Positions 1,428-62,549 of a stretch of DNA of 64,000 bases are shown in pieces. The position numbers were made by a program, and so were the translations under genes. The stretch lies in sequence record MZ475893.1; one strand, given 5' to 3'. The stretch's first letter is position 1. Every line of letters starts with the position of its first letter. Below the pieces are notes generated by a model. The model made no database searches. It was not told where the DNA came from and saw only the letters and a program-made list of their open reading frames with translations.

Positions 1428-1447
1428 AAATCTTTCTCCTGAGAGGT

Positions 1448-1477
1448 AAAAGGGGCAGGCAGAAGCCCACCCCTTTT
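1448..1477 (-). terminator. Intrinsic terminator (possibly bidirectional)
   Basis: Minus strand GGGGTGGGC-TTCT-GCCTGCCCC-TTTT downstream of 1491..3110; T-runs on both sides. Confidence 0.75.
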
Positions 1478-1490
1478 GTTTGTGTCGTTA

Positions 1491-3131: not shown

Positions 3132-3875
3132 TTAGAAAAACTGACCGTCACATTCACCAAGACTGCAACGCAGTTCCTGGTATGCAGCGATCCGTTGTTC
3201 AATTACATTAATAAACTTGTCATCAATATCATACTTCACACGAAGCGGAGCATCATATCCTTCTAAGAGGCCGTGACGTCGATACGCATCTGCACGGAGC
3301 AGCGGTGCGCTAACGTGAGCACGTTCCATAATGCTTAAATCTATCTTATCGGCATAGATGAACGGCCGCTCTCGTTTACACAGAAGGTAATCGATCTCGT
3401 GTAAATTAAAGAGTGTGAAATTCATATAGCCAATAATGAACTCCGCAATCAAACGAAAACTATCTGCCATATCTGCACTCAGATTGTGAGCGAGTATGGG
3501 TTCTATGTGTGGTTGCAGTTCAGTACGCATGTCGTACCAAGCTTCACACAGAACAGCAGGGAAGTCTTCAGGGTGAGCGGCCATAAGACCCATCACCCCT
3601 TTCTCCATATCTGCGAATGAGCTTAAAAGATTAGCGGTATCTTCAGGTGTTTCAATACCGCGACCCGTTGAAATGAACTGGCATTCAATTTCTCTCAACC
3701 AAGACTCGGACGCAGATAGGTATTGGAGAAGTGTCTCCCGAGCGCCAGCCGAAAACTCATGTCGATCAGACTCAAGAGCCTGGTCCAACAAGAAGGCTTT
3801 AGCTTTGTAGAAGTCACTATAGCGTTCAGCGGTAAAGCGGCGGAACGCTATATTATTTCTCAAATAGCCTATCAT
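3132..3875 (-). CDS. Hypothetical all-alpha protein
   Basis: 247-aa ORF with a 4-nt overlap to the upstream gene; no recognised motif. Confidence 0.65.
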   Translation of the reverse strand: MIGYLRNNIAFRRFTAERYSDFYKAKAFLLDQALESDRHEFSAGARETLLQYLSASESWLREIECQFISTGRGIETPEDTANLLSSFADMEKGVMGLMAAHPEDFPAVLCEAWYDMRTELQPHIEPILAHNLSADMADSFRLIAEFIIGYMNFTLFNLHEIDYLLCKRERPFIYADKIDLSIMERAHVSAPLLRADAYRRHGLLEGYDAPLRVKYDIDDKFINVIEQRIAAYQELRCSLGECDGQFF

Positions 3876-4696: not shown

Positions 4697-4704
4697 AAAT
4701 TAGC
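4697..4704 (-). promoter_or_regulatory. Candidate late promoter motif GCTAATTT
   Basis: Exact copy 32 nt upstream of the 4665 start; the motif recurs before other genes in the window. Confidence 0.5.
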
Positions 4705-7746: not shown

Positions 7747-7756
7747 GGGCTAGCTC

Positions 7757-7960
7757 CTAACCAGTCAGTGTTGTCCAATCAGGTTGGCCTGATTGACCCG
7801 CTTCGGGATTCTTAACTTTCGTGTTGTTGATTGTCATACGAATCCAACGCACAGTACCGTCAGAATCCTGCCAGCGAATCTTCGTTCCACCGTATGCTAA
7901 ATTAGCTACCCATCTGTCTCTGCTAGGGTCTTTGAAAGCAAGACGTGCATAAGCAGGCAT
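7757..7960 (-). CDS. Small fibre-associated protein
   Basis: GGAG RBS; Trp-rich pattern resembles the N-terminus of 10887..12908. Confidence 0.65.
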   Translation of the reverse strand: MPAYARLAFKDPSRDRWVANLAYGGTKIRWQDSDGTVRWIRMTINNTKVKNPEAGQSGQPDWTTLTG

Positions 7961-7969
7961 AAGTTCTCC

Positions 7970-10843: not shown

Positions 10844-10862
10844 ATTATGTCCTTAGATCGGC

Positions 10863-10882
10863 AAGAGGGGCCGAAGCCCCTT
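10863..10882 (-). terminator. Intrinsic terminator hairpin (UUCG loop)
   Basis: Minus strand AAGGGGC-TTCG-GCCCCTCTT right after the 10887 stop; short U tract. Confidence 0.6.
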
Positions 10883-10886
10883 CCTG

Positions 10887-17825: not shown

Positions 17826-17852
17826 AAGAACTCCTTGAATATTTACGTTCTT

Positions 17853-17860
17853 AAATTAGC
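17853..17860 (-). promoter_or_regulatory. Candidate late promoter motif GCTAATTT
   Basis: Between a terminator and the 17825 start (28 nt upstream). Confidence 0.55.
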
Positions 17861-17867
17861 AATAAAC

Positions 17868-17906
17868 AAAAAGGGAGCCAGGAACACGCAGCTCCAAGCT
17901 CCCTTT
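17868..17906 (-). terminator. Intrinsic terminator
   Basis: AAAGGGAGC...GCTCCCTTT stem followed by TTTGTTT on the minus strand, after the 17912 stop. Confidence 0.7.
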
Positions 17907-17911
17907 ATTTT

Positions 17912-23898: not shown

Positions 23899-24317
23899 TA
23901 TTGGGCCCTCATGGCAAACGTAACTGACTGCGTGTTTTCCAGTTTAGGACAACGCCAGTTGATGGTACACACATAGGTCTGATCGTACTGAGCGCTCATA
24001 CCACACGTTGTCCGTACATCGGTAACGTCATCAGTCAACCCGTTCGCTGGGTCTTCTAGTGCGATACGCATGTAGGTTGCAATCCACTGCGCGGTCTTAT
24101 CATCAAACGGTTCGAACAGGTATTGATAGACGTCAGCACCAAACGCTTCACGCCATTTACGTGAACGCTTTCTCGTACCAACAACCATCAGAATCTTTTG
24201 GACGATGCTGTCCATGTTCTGAACGTTATCGCGAGGCTCAAGATGAACCCATACGTTAACGTCACAGTAAACACGCTCGGAGACAGGCACGTCAATCAAA
24301 CGAATAGCGATAGCCAT
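23898..24317 (-). CDS. Baseplate protein, gp25/gpW-like
   Basis: SIVQKILMVVGTRKRSR.W...FGADVYQYLFEPFD is the gp25 family signature. Confidence 0.8.
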   Translation of the reverse strand: MAIAIRLIDVPVSERVYCDVNVWVHLEPRDNVQNMDSIVQKILMVVGTRKRSRKWREAFGADVYQYLFEPFDDKTAQWIATYMRIALEDPANGLTDDVTDVRTTCGMSAQYDQTYVCTINWRCPKLENTQSVTFAMRAQ

Positions 24318-24607
24318 TAGCCAAATCTCACGTTGTTGCTGCCATTGGATGCGGTGTCATTGCAAGTATTAGGGTCACCGTTGCGTTGAGCAGGCTTACC
24401 GTTAACACGCACAGTAGAACTGGAGATAGCGTAGCCCACATGCGGTGGTTTCTTAGGTGCGGAGTGTGGTTGATACGCATCACCCTGACGCACGCTTCCC
24501 TTACCGTTGATCATGACATTAGCTGAGGCTTGTACTGCGACAACAGGATAAAACCCGTTATGCCCTGTAGACAGGTCTGCGCCTAACCGAATTGCTTTCT
24601 GGCCCAT
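24317..24607 (-). CDS. PAAR-domain spike tip protein
   Basis: AIRLGADLSTGH...NVMINGKGSVRQGD..H...SSTVRVNGKPAQRNGD...C...GSNNVRFG. Confidence 0.9.
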   Translation of the reverse strand: MGQKAIRLGADLSTGHNGFYPVVAVQASANVMINGKGSVRQGDAYQPHSAPKKPPHVGYAISSSTVRVNGKPAQRNGDPNTCNDTASNGSNNVRFG

Positions 24608-24630: not shown

Positions 24631-24638
24631 AAATTAGC
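24631..24638 (-). promoter_or_regulatory. Candidate late promoter motif GCTAATTT
   Basis: Between a terminator and the PAAR start (24 nt upstream). Confidence 0.55.
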
Positions 24639-24655
24639 TTTATACGCGACAGAAA

Positions 24656-24688
24656 CAAAAACGGGCAGCCTAATGGCCACCCGGTTCT
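24656..24688 (-). terminator. Intrinsic terminator
   Basis: Minus strand CGGGTGGCC-ATTA-GGCTGCCCG-TTTTTGTTT; same GGGTGGC..GCTGCCC stem family as 44468 and 62513. Confidence 0.75.
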
Positions 24689-24706
24689 TGCGCTTGGATT
24701 TTGTCG

Positions 24707-24868
24707 CTATTCCCACATCCCTCGAACGTGTGCCACTGTGCCCTCAAGCACGTAGCCGGAATGAATAGAGGAAGGATAGACTGCCTGAGGTCCTTCCTGT
24801 AACGATAACAACCGACCAAGCATTGCGATTGCTATCAGCGACAATATGAGCAGTATAATCGTCATCAT
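24707..24868 (-). CDS. Putative 53-aa membrane peptide
   Basis: Translated by hand (below the ORF-track cutoff): MMTIILLILSLIAIAMLGRLLSLQEGPQAVYPSSIHSGYVLEGTVAHVRGMWE; purine-rich upstream (AAGAAGAG); followed by a terminator. Confidence 0.5.
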   Translation of the reverse strand: MMTIILLILSLIAIAMLGRLLSLQEGPQAVYPSSIHSGYVLEGTVAHVRGMWE

Positions 24869-24979
24869 ATCGTCGTTACTCTTCTTTTGGCCGAACGGTA
24901 TTGCATGGTTTGATCAGATTACTCCGCTGCCTATCGTCCACGATCACTTAGGTTTCAGTTTCTTCATCTCTTTACCGCC

Positions 24980-25905
24980 TGCGCTGCGGTCAAGCCGCAC
25001 ACCCTGCACACGAGTCTAACACAAAGGGGCGGAAGAACCTTTATGCTCGAAACATGCACCTGGCGAAGGAGGCCACGCATCGGTGATCTGCTGGTGTTAA
25101 CACACTTTTAAGGCCTTTCTTTTGTGCACCATTCAAGAGACAGGGCCACCAGCTAGTGATCTCTTTAAGGTATTGCACTGACTTGTGAACAAGTCACGGG
25201 TTGAAAACTATACACTTCCATATGCGCATCGGGAGAAACGCATAAGGCTGATGCACAGCTTTGACTAAGAAGGATTGTGCCCGTCGCCCGACTTCACTTG
25301 GGTATCGACAATCGGTCTCTCTTACTCCCTTGAGTACAGCGCAAGGAACACTGAGTCAATGAGTAGTCTGCGGGTGTTTCTCACTAGAGGGTGAAAGCCT
25401 CTTAGATTCTTTATTCTGTACAGCACCTTAGTGGACTGAATCGCCCGCTGGAGCATCCAATAAGGCCCTCTCGGTTAGGCACCTCACTGTACAGAAAACC
25501 CGGGGAGTACGTTACCATATAAAACGACTCTCCCCAATGCATACCAGAGCGACTTGATATGCATCAGGCAGTGAACGTTTGCAGAAGTTCAACTGCTTTG
25601 CTTCCCGCCGAACTAGAGCCACACCGTTGAGTCTACGGTCCACAGTAGTTACATGCCTAGAGGATATTGCCTTGGAGTTTATGTCCTATGGAATAACCGG
25701 GCTCGTCGCGTCGGTGCCACAGCAATATTCTATCATGTGGTGCTGGGGTTGTTCCCCACATTATGCGATTGCTCGCAACCAGCTGGAGGTCTGCGTCCGA
25801 TGAAAAGAATAACTAAGACGCAGATGAGCTTTTCAGAAAAAACGGCACACCAAGAAAATTGGCTAAACTCAGTGTGCGTATAGATATTACTATCTACAAT
25901 TTTTA
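24980..25905 (+). ncRNA. Candidate large structured non-coding RNA (~0.9 kb); boundaries approximate
   Basis: The only long gene-free gap in the window; at least 15 hairpins found by eye, several nested; wobble pairs are almost all G-U on +; GAAA tetraloop at 25393-25396; hairpin plus T-rich tail at 25881-25908. Confidence 0.6.
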
Positions 25906-25924
25906 TTTACAGATTTTTCTGAGA

Positions 25925-27688
25925 TTAGAATGCCTTACGTTCAACATTCGAATAGTACGTTTCGTACGGCTCAGAATACAACTCAGGACCGCGCTGCGCA
26001 CGCACAGTAACATAGCCTGTATGGCGATTCACTGCGGTGATTTCGATAGTAGGCTGTTTAGGCTTAATCGTGCTGTAGATAGGCGCGTTCATCGTTGGTG
26101 GGTCTGTCTGAATCTTGTTTACAGATTGCAGTGCAGCACCAGACAGCGTAGGGAACTTAAAGCGCAATTCAGCACGCGTGCGGCCTGTAGCGATCTTGAT
26201 ACTACCAGCAGGCAGTTCAACGCCGCTCTGTTTCAGGTACGCTGCGATGCGACGACCAATACCCGCCAATTGGTTCTTAGCTACAGGGTCCATCAGACCA
26301 TCGAAGCTAATGGCAGCCGGCGGTTGATTCACTGACAGATGCATACCAGTGTTGAAGTAGCCTTCTGCGAGGAAGCGATACAACTGACGAACAATCTCAG
26401 GAGTGTTCTGTGCGATCACAGGCGTCAACAACTCAGGTGGATTGGTCTTCATCGGGTCGCGGTATTCAACCTGACCTTGTGAGTAACCCATACTGATATG
26501 CTTAACACGCGGATAAGCAGACTGCAACGAACCAGTAGAGCGAATCAGGATAGAGCCAGACTTCGCTTGATCATACAGTTCATCGCTGGTGGTTGTTGAG
26601 AACAGGAAGTAGTCGGTAGGCACAGCCATACGACCGATAGCTTCGATTGCTTTCGTCTGTACTTCTTTGATCGTCGAGCCGAACACTACACGACTGCGAT
26701 TAGGCTGAGCAGTAGACACAGCAAAGAATGCGCCGTACACTACCTTCTGATCTTTGACGATAGGCGAAGCAGACTTAACCTTTTGACCGCCAGGCAGTGG
26801 AGGTAGCTTAACGCCCACCAGCTTGCCTTTAGTGATTGCTTTGTTCGCAACAACAGGCTTCAAGGAAGACAGCAGCTTGTTCAACTCAGACCCGTCAAGA
26901 ATCTTCTCCAGCGGAACAACGAGGTTCTGCGGCAGATAGTGTTTCTTGCGCAACGTATAGATAACGGTGTCTTTCTTGATCTGTAACGGAGTAGCCATGT
27001 TACGACCAGCTTGACCAACAGGCTGGAACGTATTCGCTTTGTCCTGACCAACAGAGCCGAACTCTTTGTCAAACACAGACTGACCGATGATGTTCGCTGC
27101 ACGCAGATGGCCACGCACGTTGAACACAATCTTAGGTTCATCTTTCATGCGCAACTCATAGCGGTCACGCGTCAGATAGACCATGCTGAACTTGTCGCCT
27201 TTTTCCAGCTCAAGGTCATACTCATCGTTAGCGTCATCGATAACAACTTTCTTACCCTGATAGGTAGCGTACACGCGAGCGGCAGCAGATTCCGAAGCAA
27301 TCTTCAACGCTACGCCGCAGTTAGACAGCGCGGCAGCATAGTTGGTTGCGTGGAACAGCGCGTCATTCGATTCCGTGATAGCGACTTCTTTACCGCGTAC
27401 GCCCAGCGCAAGGTGGATAGCGCTAGAGCTGGACATGAACACAGTGTGGCCTGTATCTTCATGCTTACCAGCAAAGGACATACCACTAACACGCGACACA
27501 GACAGCGCATTCAGGTGCGGAGTAGTGAACGTATCACCCGCAGCAAAGTCAAAGATTTCACCTTGACGCCACGCGTAACCGATGTTGTTTGAACTCAAGC
27601 CAACAAACGCATCACCCACCTGTCGAATCGTAGTAGGGATAATGCTGAGATCGCGAACGATCTGATTTTGTTTCTGAATGATGGTCAT
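25925..27688 (-). CDS. Hypothetical protein, probable internal head protein (paralog-domain family)
   Basis: 587 aa; IASESAA motif followed by the ~65-aa domain shared with 40442, 49047 and 56286. Confidence 0.75.
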   Translation of the reverse strand: MTIIQKQNQIVRDLSIIPTTIRQVGDAFVGLSSNNIGYAWRQGEIFDFAAGDTFTTPHLNALSVSRVSGMSFAGKHEDTGHTVFMSSSSAIHLALGVRGKEVAITESNDALFHATNYAAALSNCGVALKIASESAAARVYATYQGKKVVIDDANDEYDLELEKGDKFSMVYLTRDRYELRMKDEPKIVFNVRGHLRAANIIGQSVFDKEFGSVGQDKANTFQPVGQAGRNMATPLQIKKDTVIYTLRKKHYLPQNLVVPLEKILDGSELNKLLSSLKPVVANKAITKGKLVGVKLPPLPGGQKVKSASPIVKDQKVVYGAFFAVSTAQPNRSRVVFGSTIKEVQTKAIEAIGRMAVPTDYFLFSTTTSDELYDQAKSGSILIRSTGSLQSAYPRVKHISMGYSQGQVEYRDPMKTNPPELLTPVIAQNTPEIVRQLYRFLAEGYFNTGMHLSVNQPPAAISFDGLMDPVAKNQLAGIGRRIAAYLKQSGVELPAGSIKIATGRTRAELRFKFPTLSGAALQSVNKIQTDPPTMNAPIYSTIKPKQPTIEITAVNRHTGYVTVRAQRGPELYSEPYETYYSNVERKAF

Positions 27689-30215: not shown

Positions 30216-30223
30216 AAATTAGC
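30216..30223 (-). promoter_or_regulatory. Candidate late promoter motif GCTAATTT
   Basis: 31 nt upstream of the 30185 start, in a short intergenic gap. Confidence 0.55.
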
Positions 30224-33910: not shown

Positions 33911-33913
33911 ATT

Positions 33914-34126
33914 TTACTCCAGAATGCGAAAAGGCCCGCTAACAAAGCGGATAGCTATGTTACTCAGGCCATGTTGTTTCAACAGTTTTGCACAGCAGTT
34001 GCAGCAAAGTCTTTTGTCAGTTGGATTAATTACGGACGAGGCGTATTCGCTTATCACGTAATTGTCGTACGGTTCATCGCAGAACTGACACAGCTCCTGC
34101 TTTTCGAGTGATACTCGGATGCGCAT
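33914..34126 (-). CDS. Small zinc-finger protein
   Basis: CQFC...CCNCC. Confidence 0.55.
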   Translation of the reverse strand: MRIRVSLEKQELCQFCDEPYDNYVISEYASSVINPTDKRLCCNCCAKLLKQHGLSNIAIRFVSGPFRILE

Positions 34127-34128
34127 TG

Positions 34129-41119: not shown

Positions 41120-41139
41120 GGTATCTCCAGGAAACGAGA

Positions 41140-41162
41140 AAGGGCCAAAACATCTGGCCCTT
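41140..41162 (-). terminator. Hairpin after the tail tube gene
   Basis: AAGGGCCA-7 nt-TGGCCCTT followed by TCTCGTTT. Confidence 0.6.
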
Positions 41163-41167
41163 AGTTG

Positions 41168-43418: not shown

Positions 43419-43426
43419 AAATTAGC
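43419..43426 (-). promoter_or_regulatory. Candidate late promoter motif GCTAATTT
   Basis: 43 nt upstream of the sheath start. Confidence 0.55.
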
Positions 43427-44448: not shown

Positions 44449-44467
44449 TTGTGGTACCCCAGATACG

Positions 44468-44494
44468 AAAAAGGGCAGCCGAAGCCACCCTTTT
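44468..44494 (-). terminator. Intrinsic terminator ending the capsid operon
   Basis: Minus strand AAAAGGGTGGC-TTCG-GCTGCCCTTTTT. Confidence 0.85.
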
Positions 44495-44513
44495 GGTTAC
44501 CCGTAATCGGGTG

Positions 44514-44918: not shown

Positions 44919-44973
44919 GTTTGGTCCTCAGTGAAGAGGGCAGCTTATGCCACCCTCAGATTGCACAACAATG

Positions 44974-58265: not shown

Positions 58266-58273
58266 AAATTAGC
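58266..58273 (-). promoter_or_regulatory. Candidate late promoter motif GCTAATTT
   Basis: Between a hairpin and the 58232 start (34 nt upstream). Confidence 0.55.
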
Positions 58274-62487: not shown

Positions 62488-62512
62488 TGCTTTTCCTCAC
62501 GATGTAGAAACT

Positions 62513-62536
62513 AAAAAGGGCGGCCGAAGCCACCCT
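62513..62536 (-). terminator. Intrinsic terminator
   Basis: Minus strand AGGGTGGC-TTCG-GCCGCCC-TTTTT. Confidence 0.85.
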
Positions 62537-62549
62537 GTGAGGAATAGGC

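Follow-up and report, generated by a model that had tools for sequence, protein, structure and literature searches.

What occupies the one large stretch without genes in an otherwise closely packed part of a jumbo phage genome? The DNA analysed here (64 kb in all, referred to as the window) is part of Erwinia phage pEa_SNUABM_45 (MZ475893.1, 100% identity; the full record is 263.9 kb, and window position 24600 is record position 86600). The near-identical phage pEa_SNUABM_7 belongs to the genus Snuvirus. Every long ORF of the 64 kb lies on the minus strand, and positions 24869–25924 (1056 nt) constitute both the largest intergenic gap and the only large non-coding stretch, the runners-up being gaps of 223 and 218 nt that each contain a plausible small ORF. 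The original prediction had described this gap as by far the largest, devoid of a credible ORF, and set among genes all on one strand. This description is correct: there is no ORF longer than 76 aa in the gap, and Pfam searches with ten ORF pieces from it gave no match. Its G+C content is ordinary. In the RefSeq annotation of pEa_SNUABM_7, the 1317 nt from the PAAR gene to the 587-aa gene carry no feature. The region lies within the late structural gene block, among baseplate genes, and its two neighbours are as follows.

24317–24607, minus strand: PAAR spike-tip gene, 96 aa, the downstream neighbour (Pfam PAAR_motif, E 1.5e-9; annotated in relatives)
25925–27688, minus strand: 587-aa gene, the upstream neighbour of the RNA described below (Pfam KMPT-N, E 8e-20; phrog_32352, unknown function)

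A degenerate self-splicing intron, another known ribozyme, or a decayed protein gene might be expected to leave a gap of this kind. Its size is within the range of ORF-less group II introns, and in the Alexandraviruses a 13-nt piece of a conserved motif at the edge of the gap (34 nt, described below) is repeated 203 nt upstream, inside the 587-aa gene. Nevertheless, we regard these origins as scarcely credible. The 587-aa and PAAR genes are both intact, and every relative has them annotated as two distinct genes, so that there is nothing which a putative intron interrupts; and models of group I introns, group II introns and ribozymes gave no match at E values up to 10 in eight genomes. As for a decayed gene, stop codons number 15–26 per frame in the window and 12–38 across the four genomes checked, the indels in the gap do not come in threes, and the ORF pieces are those that lack a Pfam match.

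The slot between the 587-aa gene and PAAR is 1267–1456 nt long in Snuvirus, Sasquatchvirus and Alexandravirus. Its carriers include Sasquatchvirus Y3, Dickeya phage AD1, Alexandra and a dozen pEa_SNUABM Alexandraviruses, together with two metagenomic lineages (L066, and L104 with L026). Scans that used a 15-bp hairpin of the gap (25530–25571) as the search pattern recovered all of the relatives; the metagenome scan gave 39 matches, three of them real and most of them due to chance, and two candidates (L105 and L079) were discarded as fortuitous. In GTDB genomes the pattern was matched 16 times, in each case by chance as judged by nhmmer, and BLAST of the RNA region against E. coli genomes found nothing. 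The gap is conserved to roughly the degree of the flanking genes (mean pairwise column identity of 0.60–0.88 and 0.70–0.93, respectively), but its alignment is rich in indels. The only ORF to keep its position across the relatives is one of 47–53 codons that immediately precedes PAAR. In Salmondvirus JA11 (1.74 kb) and Yersinia phage fHe-Yen9-02 (1.66 kb) the slot is longer and holds other content, which includes small protein genes; phage NCTB is without such a slot. When these three genomes were searched with nhmmer, using the 13-phage alignment, and with covariance model R1 (see below), only the terminator was found to be common with JA11; the 1-kb RNA is therefore undetectable in JA11, fHe-Yen9-02 and NCTB.

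The minus strands of 13 phages were aligned without any fitting to structure (alignment A3) and folded using RNAalifold. The resulting consensus contains 293 pairs, of which 123–125 have changes on both sides, with a covariation term of 28.2. By comparison, 1128 nt of neighbouring coding sequence from the same phages, taken through the same pipeline, gave 26 compensated pairs out of 195, a term of 2.5, and an energy of −125.6 kcal/mol. The 5′ core and the 3′ module were modelled with Infernal (models R1 and R3), with slid partners and shuffles as controls. In the 5′ core (25789–25603), 97.0% of cells are paired compared to 35–39% with slid partners, and 25 of the 52 pairs are compensated; in the 3′ module (24824–24690) the corresponding figures are 97.9%, 35–46%, and 19 of 35. 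None of 500 shuffles reached the observed value in either case. Model R1 scores 138–213 bits in 16 genomes and 107 bits in the metagenomic genome L104. The compensatory pairs thus go beyond the coding, sliding and shuffle controls, as expected of a structured non-coding RNA, and more than 120 of them come from just ~15 distinct genomes. The long-range helices of the fold reach up to ~380 nt. Local folding in 150-nt windows (mean z of −1.28 on the minus strand and −0.60 on the plus strand) is not significantly better than that of the flanking genes. The row of the window itself fits the consensus structure more poorly than the Alexandravirus rows do (33 G-U, 20 A-C, and 33 other combinations), a consequence of its being the most divergent member and of an alignment made without regard to structure.

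Searches of Rfam at E values up to 10, using the window region and seven relatives, produced no match beyond two or three chance-level ones to snoRNAs or leaders, and there was none at gathering score in the whole window. We therefore find strong support for the earlier proposal of an undescribed structured RNA of about 1 kb in these jumbo phages, since covariation extends across three genera and two metagenomic lineages and there is no Rfam match; the strand and the 3′ end that had been proposed have to be revised. Sequence comparison shows a new family of multi-domain RNAs of predicted structure, on the gene strand and closed by a terminator, in the three phage genera and the two metagenomic lineages.

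The strand deserves particular attention, because the RNA had been assigned to the plus strand on the basis of a count of G-U wobbles, as an antisense transcript of about 1 kb ending at a hairpin and T-rich tail at 25881–25908. The alignment has a folding energy of −257.8 kcal/mol on the minus strand and −158.4 kcal/mol on the plus strand, a penalty of 100 kcal/mol, with covariation terms of 28.2 and 13.2. In the consensus structure, the minus strand has G-U in 507 cells and A-C in 40; on the plus strand the 507 turn into A-C mismatches and only 40 G-U cells are left. Full-length folding does exceed dinucleotide shuffles, as had been anticipated, but on the minus strand (z = −3.4 for the window, and −2.8, −3.7 and −4.2 for three other phages) rather than on the plus strand (−0.8 for the window, and −1.5, −0.6 and −0.5). 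There are 17 cells with UNCG or GNRA tetraloops on the minus strand compared to 5 for the reverse reading. Together with the conserved intrinsic terminator described below, these comparisons indicate that the predicted RNA is read on the minus strand, in common with every gene, and hence that it is not antisense.

The evidence that had suggested the opposite can be explained. The G-U count holds true of the hairpins that were chosen for it, and these hairpins do fold slightly better on the plus strand (summed energies of −163 and −154 kcal/mol); however, several of them are not conserved helices. Helices are mirror-symmetric, and folding the alignment on the plus strand also produces 76 compensated pairs. 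Against this, the hairpin at 25881–25908 forms in the window only, and scans gave no conserved plus-strand terminator and no sigma-70-like promoter (0 sites in the gap). An antisense RNA from the plus strand is thus very improbable.

The hairpin at 25881–25908 lies within a near-invariant 34-nt motif at the 5′ edge of the minus-strand RNA, and the unit does not finish at 24869, where the left boundary had been placed: the covarying, terminator-closed region runs on to 24651 and includes a small ORF. The unit therefore comprises three parts, namely a multi-domain RNA of ~1.0 kb, a small membrane-protein ORF amid covarying hairpins, and a terminator. In the model, the ~1.0 kb part (25914 to ~24870) has at least four domains and more than 40 helices. 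Its elements, in 5′ to 3′ order, are listed here below the whole unit.

24651–25914, minus strand: whole unit, ~1.26 kb predicted structured RNA, spanning from the 5′ motif through the terminator U-run
25881–25914, minus strand: 34-nt motif, directly 3′ of the stop codon of the 587-aa gene; 32 of 34 columns invariant in 13 phages
25838–25877, minus strand: first hairpin in the minus-strand fold, 10 bp with a 13-nt loop
25790–25828, minus strand: hairpin of 8 pairs, 7 with compensatory change
25603–25789, minus strand: 5′ core domain, 52 pairs in 8 helices (model R1)
25530–25571, minus strand: 15-bp hairpin with invariant flanks (columns 377–392 with 408–423, two invariant G-U pairs)
25414–25496, minus strand: three-tier stem, with outer and middle helices of 10 bp each and a 6-bp tip with an invariant AGC triloop
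25263–25368, minus strand: domain 2, including copy 1 of a repeated module (25269–25318); 5/5, 3/3, 8/9 and 5/5 pairs compensated
25217–25247, minus strand: 13-bp hairpin, 6 compensated pairs
25092–25182, minus strand: domain 3, with helix 25171–25161 to 25139–25128 (10 pairs, 7 compensated)
24974–25084, minus strand: domain 4, with an 8-bp closing helix, an inner 7-bp helix and a 4-bp hairpin (2, 5 and 3 pairs compensated)
24926–24960, minus strand: copy 2 of the repeated module (6 + 6 pairs, 5 and 3 compensated)

The 34-nt motif occurs once per genome. Its potential hairpin is disrupted in L066, a divergent relative that nevertheless retains the letters on either side, from which it follows that 25914–25881 is a sequence motif and not a terminator hairpin. 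Possible roles are those of a dedicated promoter, of a site for processing or protein binding, or of the 5′ terminus of the RNA. We considered and dropped a T4-like late promoter, given that each genome has a single copy of the motif and that its core shows no enrichment. The first hairpin has a counterpart with different letters at the same place in every relative. A U-run comes after it in just two cases, the window and JA11; this run is absent from the Alexandraviruses and could stop part of the transcription arriving from upstream.

Within the 5′ core, a long-range helix of 20 bp joins 25738–25717 to 25675–25651, with 10 compensated pairs. In the three-tier stem, 9 of the 10 pairs of the middle helix (25466–25457 with 25434–25425) are compensated, and the outer helix still pairs in 13 of 14 genomes although its letters differ entirely. 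The 4-bp hairpin of domain 4 has a UUCG-type loop in some relatives. A module of ~60 nt is present twice, ~380 nt apart, the second copy being the weaker one (model R2, in most Alexandraviruses); secondary matches to R2 in relatives fall at the position homologous to copy 2, and in the relative L004 there is a direct repeat of 32 nt at 78% identity. The automatic structure of R2 is poor (28 pairs), and this model was therefore applied only to detect the internal repeat.

Many of the stems proposed from the single sequence agree with this comparative fold. Those at 25221–25244, 25273–25313, 25426–25430/25461–25465, 25537–25564, 25764–25777, 25789–25825 and 25845–25877 coincide with helices that are compensated in relatives, and the pairing of those at 25414–25423/25487–25496 and 25179–25196 survives changes of the letters in 13 of 14 and 14 of 14 genomes, respectively. 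The stems at 25661–25687 and 25714–25743 are superseded by the long-range 20-bp helix. Neither the stem at 25345–25380 nor the pair spanning 25090–25153 matches the comparative fold, and 25384–25405 is a hairpin in an insertion that is private to the lineage of the window.

Could such pairing instead reflect an element acting at the level of DNA, for example a packaging site, hairpins in single-stranded DNA, or a replication origin that uses a primer RNA like RNA II of ColE1? The region is the only large non-coding one of a very compact genome, and a structured primer RNA would also give strand-specific covariation. However, there is no change of GC skew and no switch of gene orientation at the gap; there are helices spanning up to ~380 nt, RNA-type UUCG loops and a transcription terminator at the end; and the unit lies inside the late structural gene block. 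We consider a DNA-level element to be most improbable, and prefer the reading as a transcribed, structured RNA.

The 3′ part of the unit differs from the rest in containing a conserved ORF, and its features, with the site that follows them, are as follows.

24840–24886, minus strand: predicted hairpin around the start codon of the small ORF and its ribosome-binding site (10 pairs, one of them compensated; 93% of cells paired)
24707–24868, minus strand: small ORF, 53 aa, with an N-terminal hydrophobic helix
24690–24824, minus strand: 3′ module, a long-range helix of 6–7 bp around covarying hairpins (model R3)
24651–24688, minus strand: intrinsic terminator from the terminator scan, a 13-bp G+C-rich stem followed by a U-run
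24631–24638, minus strand: GCTAATTT promoter-like site of PAAR, between the terminator and PAAR

The small ORF is open for 47–53 codons in 14 of 14 genomes and its hydrophobic N-terminus is conserved. An AGGAG-type ribosome-binding site precedes it in most of these genomes, its indels are multiples of three, and variation is lowest at codon position 2 (0.074, compared to 0.134 and 0.167). It is thus probably translated, judging by these signs of coding. It matches no family in Pfam or PHROG. The 3′ two-thirds of the ORF overlap the covarying hairpins of the 3′ module, and the compensatory RNA changes there alter the encoded amino acids. JA11 and fHe-Yen9-02 have ORFs with a similar hydrophobic start at the same place; R3 matches fHe-Yen9-02 (26.8 bits, E 6e-4), and JA11 has a 17-nt identical stretch and compensated hairpins, as judged by eye. 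The comparison shows the small-ORF module, as delimited by these sequence matches, to be older and more widespread than the 1-kb part. The terminator is conserved in five phage groups including JA11, with changes from G-U to G-C in its stem, and ends the unit 45 nt ahead of PAAR; it has the G+C-rich stem, the U-run and the conserved place of a Rho-independent terminator.

This arrangement raises the possibility that the whole fold is a cis-acting leader or 3′ UTR, which either controls the translation or stability of the small ORF, in the manner of hok, or sets the amount of transcription reaching PAAR. A predicted hairpin takes in the start codon and its ribosome-binding site, and the ORF is embedded in covarying structure; a strong terminator stands directly before PAAR, which has its own promoter-like site; and, the 34-nt motif being unique in the genome, a separate promoter for the RNA is only putative. 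On the other side, known cis-regulators are several-fold smaller, and the 1-kb part is conserved at least as well as the ORF and contains internal module repeats. The start-codon hairpin has one compensated pair, and since the window forms just 5 of its 10 pairs it is weakly supported there. The occurrence of the small-ORF module in fHe-Yen9-02 and JA11, both of which lack a detectable 1-kb RNA, argues against the 1-kb fold being a mere leader. On balance we judge a purely cis-acting role to be unlikely, and in what follows treat the 1-kb RNA as an entity in its own right.

Hok-type type I toxin mRNAs do have a small hydrophobic ORF in a highly folded mRNA, and are similar to the unit in that the translation start is predicted to be sequestered, but the jumbo-phage RNA is several times longer. 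Of the features of a hok-like system, the hydrophobic ORF of 47–53 aa is present; for the antisense gene, the plus strand has no promoter-like site and folds poorly.

Seven copies of the 8-nt sequence GCTAATTT are present in the window, and every one is on the minus strand, in an intergenic position ahead of a gene; 1.6 copies are expected, and no shuffle reaches seven. None of these copies is within the gap, and the unique 34-nt motif is not among these recurrent sites. The nearest copy upstream is at 30216–30223, and no strong minus-strand terminator was found between it and the RNA. We infer from this that the RNA originates either by read-through of the upstream gene block or from the 34-nt motif as a candidate promoter. 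The transcript, its ends and its timing are likewise deduced from these sequence signals; literature searches located neither a description of the RNA nor a transcriptome for any of these phages. We propose that the RNA would be made late, by one of these two routes, and that the terminator would insulate the baseplate genes downstream, with PAAR being served by its own GCTAATTT site.

An RNA unit closed by such a terminator resembles a moron-like accessory cassette. Phage morons, for example HK97 gp15, are autonomous cassettes of promoter, gene and terminator between late genes. Like them, the present unit would be an accessory insertion between conserved tail or baseplate genes, with its own terminator, in a slot whose cargo differs among related genera; unlike them, its main cargo is a 1-kb RNA rather than a protein, and its own promoter is only a candidate. 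We suggest that the unit may be a moron-like accessory cassette in a variable slot.

GOLLD and ROOL are multi-domain, strongly covarying non-coding RNAs of ~600–800 nt and unknown function, often found on phages and prophages, and the original prediction had drawn a comparison with them. The comparison holds as an analogy of size and setting, both being multi-domain covarying phage RNAs of this size class, but not as membership: the covariance models of GOLLD (RF01998) and ROOL (RF03087) gave no match at E values up to 10 in the window region or in seven related loci. The jumbo-phage RNA is longer, at ~1.0–1.26 kb, and carries a small ORF and a terminator. GOLLD-like association with tRNA genes is also absent, in that a tRNA/tmRNA scan of the 64-kb window found none; the phage setting is shared, but here it is the baseplate block of lytic Erwinia and Dickeya jumbo phages. 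OLE provides a second comparison. It is a large structured RNA directly upstream of the gene for a membrane protein (its partner OapA) in one transcription unit, and the jumbo-phage RNA similarly lies ahead of a membrane-protein ORF in one unit. It differs in host group and setting, in that the candidate partner is a 53-aa single-helix peptide, and in that this peptide also occurs without the 1-kb RNA in related phages. The OLE model (RF01071) gave no match, and the adjacent small ORF, having no Pfam or PHROG family, was not assigned as an oapA homologue. By cryo-EM, GOLLD and ROOL are reported to form RNA-only assemblies (bioRxiv 10.1101/2024.12.08.627333).

By analogy with these systems, our best guess is that the jumbo-phage RNA is a late RNA for which, as for GOLLD, ROOL or OLE, the fold may be the basis of its action, though it belongs to none of these families. 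It might function as a scaffold, as a ribonucleoprotein or as a self-assembling particle, possibly together with the co-transcribed membrane peptide, and would act neither by antisense pairing nor merely as a leader. Action through the three-dimensional fold is the least certain step of this scheme, and the case for it consists of the size, the domain complexity, the internal repeats and the conservation of the RNA. The joint reading, of a new family of large structured RNAs on the minus strand, made late, in a moron-like unit, and acting through their fold, seems to us to be likely. A bolder version, in which lytic jumbo phages possess here a new class of giant functional RNA that is produced late beside the baseplate genes and forms a self-assembling particle or a ribozyme-like machine, perhaps working with the peptide or even being carried in the virion, is tentative and rather doubtful. 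What is new is the family itself, which falls within the known kind of large ornate phage RNAs.

Apart from ribosomal and intron RNAs, very few structured non-coding RNAs are known to exceed ~600 nt. The discovery of each such class (GOLLD, ROOL, OLE) gave structural biology new ground, and the RNA described here is longer than any of these three. It is found in cultivable lytic phages of a host that is tractable in the laboratory, which makes its expression, structure and location directly accessible to study. The RNA further suggests that the late gene blocks of jumbo phages are able to carry RNA cargo in a variable accessory slot.

Two other comparisons were considered. The GGA motifs of a CsrB-like sponge, as judged by eye in the alignment, seemed no commoner than chance, and this candidate was dropped. 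An intergenic RNA, misc_4, has been reported from RNA-seq of phage phiR1-37 (PMC4848604); it is probably unrelated, because that phage is phiKZ-like and the RNA lies beside an RNA-polymerase subunit gene. Finally, we note that several database records place small ‘hypothetical proteins’, on either strand, within the region of this RNA, annotations that the present reading corrects.

Several GenBank and RefSeq records of related phages (L006, L008, L009, L011 and L013 among the sequences compared) carry annotated coding sequences inside the slot between the 587-aa gene and the PAAR gene, and the "hypothetical proteins" annotated in the region of the structured RNA are about 47–155 aa long and lie on either strand. 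With the exception of the small ORF adjoining PAAR (24707–24868, minus strand, 53 aa), these coding sequences lack conservation and are probably spurious. Between the terminator and PAAR, AD1 and pEa_SNUABM_3 have an additional insertion of about 120 nt (sequences L003, L007 and L010; columns 377–500 of alignment A1, displayed for L003 and L007), and at this site the annotations of pEa_SNUABM_3 and pEa_SNUABM_33 include an ORF of about 40 codons.

In the genera of JA11 and fHe-Yen9-02 the slot is 1.66–1.74 kb long and its content differs. It occupies positions 3465–5204 of L015 in JA11, and 1–997 of L031 together with 1–663 of L032 in fHe-Yen9-02, where the linearisation point of the record falls inside the slot and seven tiny ORFs are annotated. 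One small protein is common to the two slots, with lengths of 35 and 59 aa and an identity of 53%, and both also contain a hydrophobic small ORF; the slot of JA11 has an ORF of 103 aa as well. About 0.7 kb at the 5′ side of these slots is unexplained sequence.

Two hairpins listed in the original prediction, at 25384–25405 and about 25568–25596, lie within insertions private to the Snuvirus lineage, and are missing in the other 12 aligned phages.

The 587-aa protein encoded upstream of the RNA (25925–27688) contains the Pfam domain KMPT-N (PF20294, E 8e-20); its PHROG is of unknown function. A 13-nt part of the 5′ motif of the RNA occurs a second time 203 nt upstream, within the coding sequence of this gene (26115–26124, minus strand, with one mismatch in the window). 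The repeat is exact in the Alexandraviruses, near 2740 in L004, near 2743 in L012 and at the equivalent place in the others. An internal start or a processing site may lie here, or the match may be due to chance.

Many short intergenic gaps of the window contain a G+C-rich hairpin followed by a T-run. In several of them the stem letters are nearly those of the terminator at the 3′ end of the RNA. The gaps with such a hairpin include:

1428–1490, minus strand, hairpin and T-run
10844–10886, minus strand, same
17826–17911, minus strand, same
41120–41167, minus strand, same
44449–44513, minus strand, same
44919–44973, minus strand, same
62488–62549, minus strand, same

The second- and third-largest gaps, 7747–7969 and 33911–34128, each appear to hold one unlisted small ORF of about 65–70 codons with a ribosome-binding site, as judged by eye on the minus-strand sequence.

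The sequence GCTAATTT occurs seven times in the window, against 1.6 expected, and always on the gene strand:

4697–4704, minus strand, GCTAATTT
7899–7906, minus strand, same
17853–17860, minus strand, same
24631–24638, minus strand, same
30216–30223, minus strand, same
43419–43426, minus strand, same
58266–58273, minus strand, same

Every copy is located in intergenic DNA with a start codon 25–70 nt downstream, and GCTAATTT is probably the core of the phage's own promoter.
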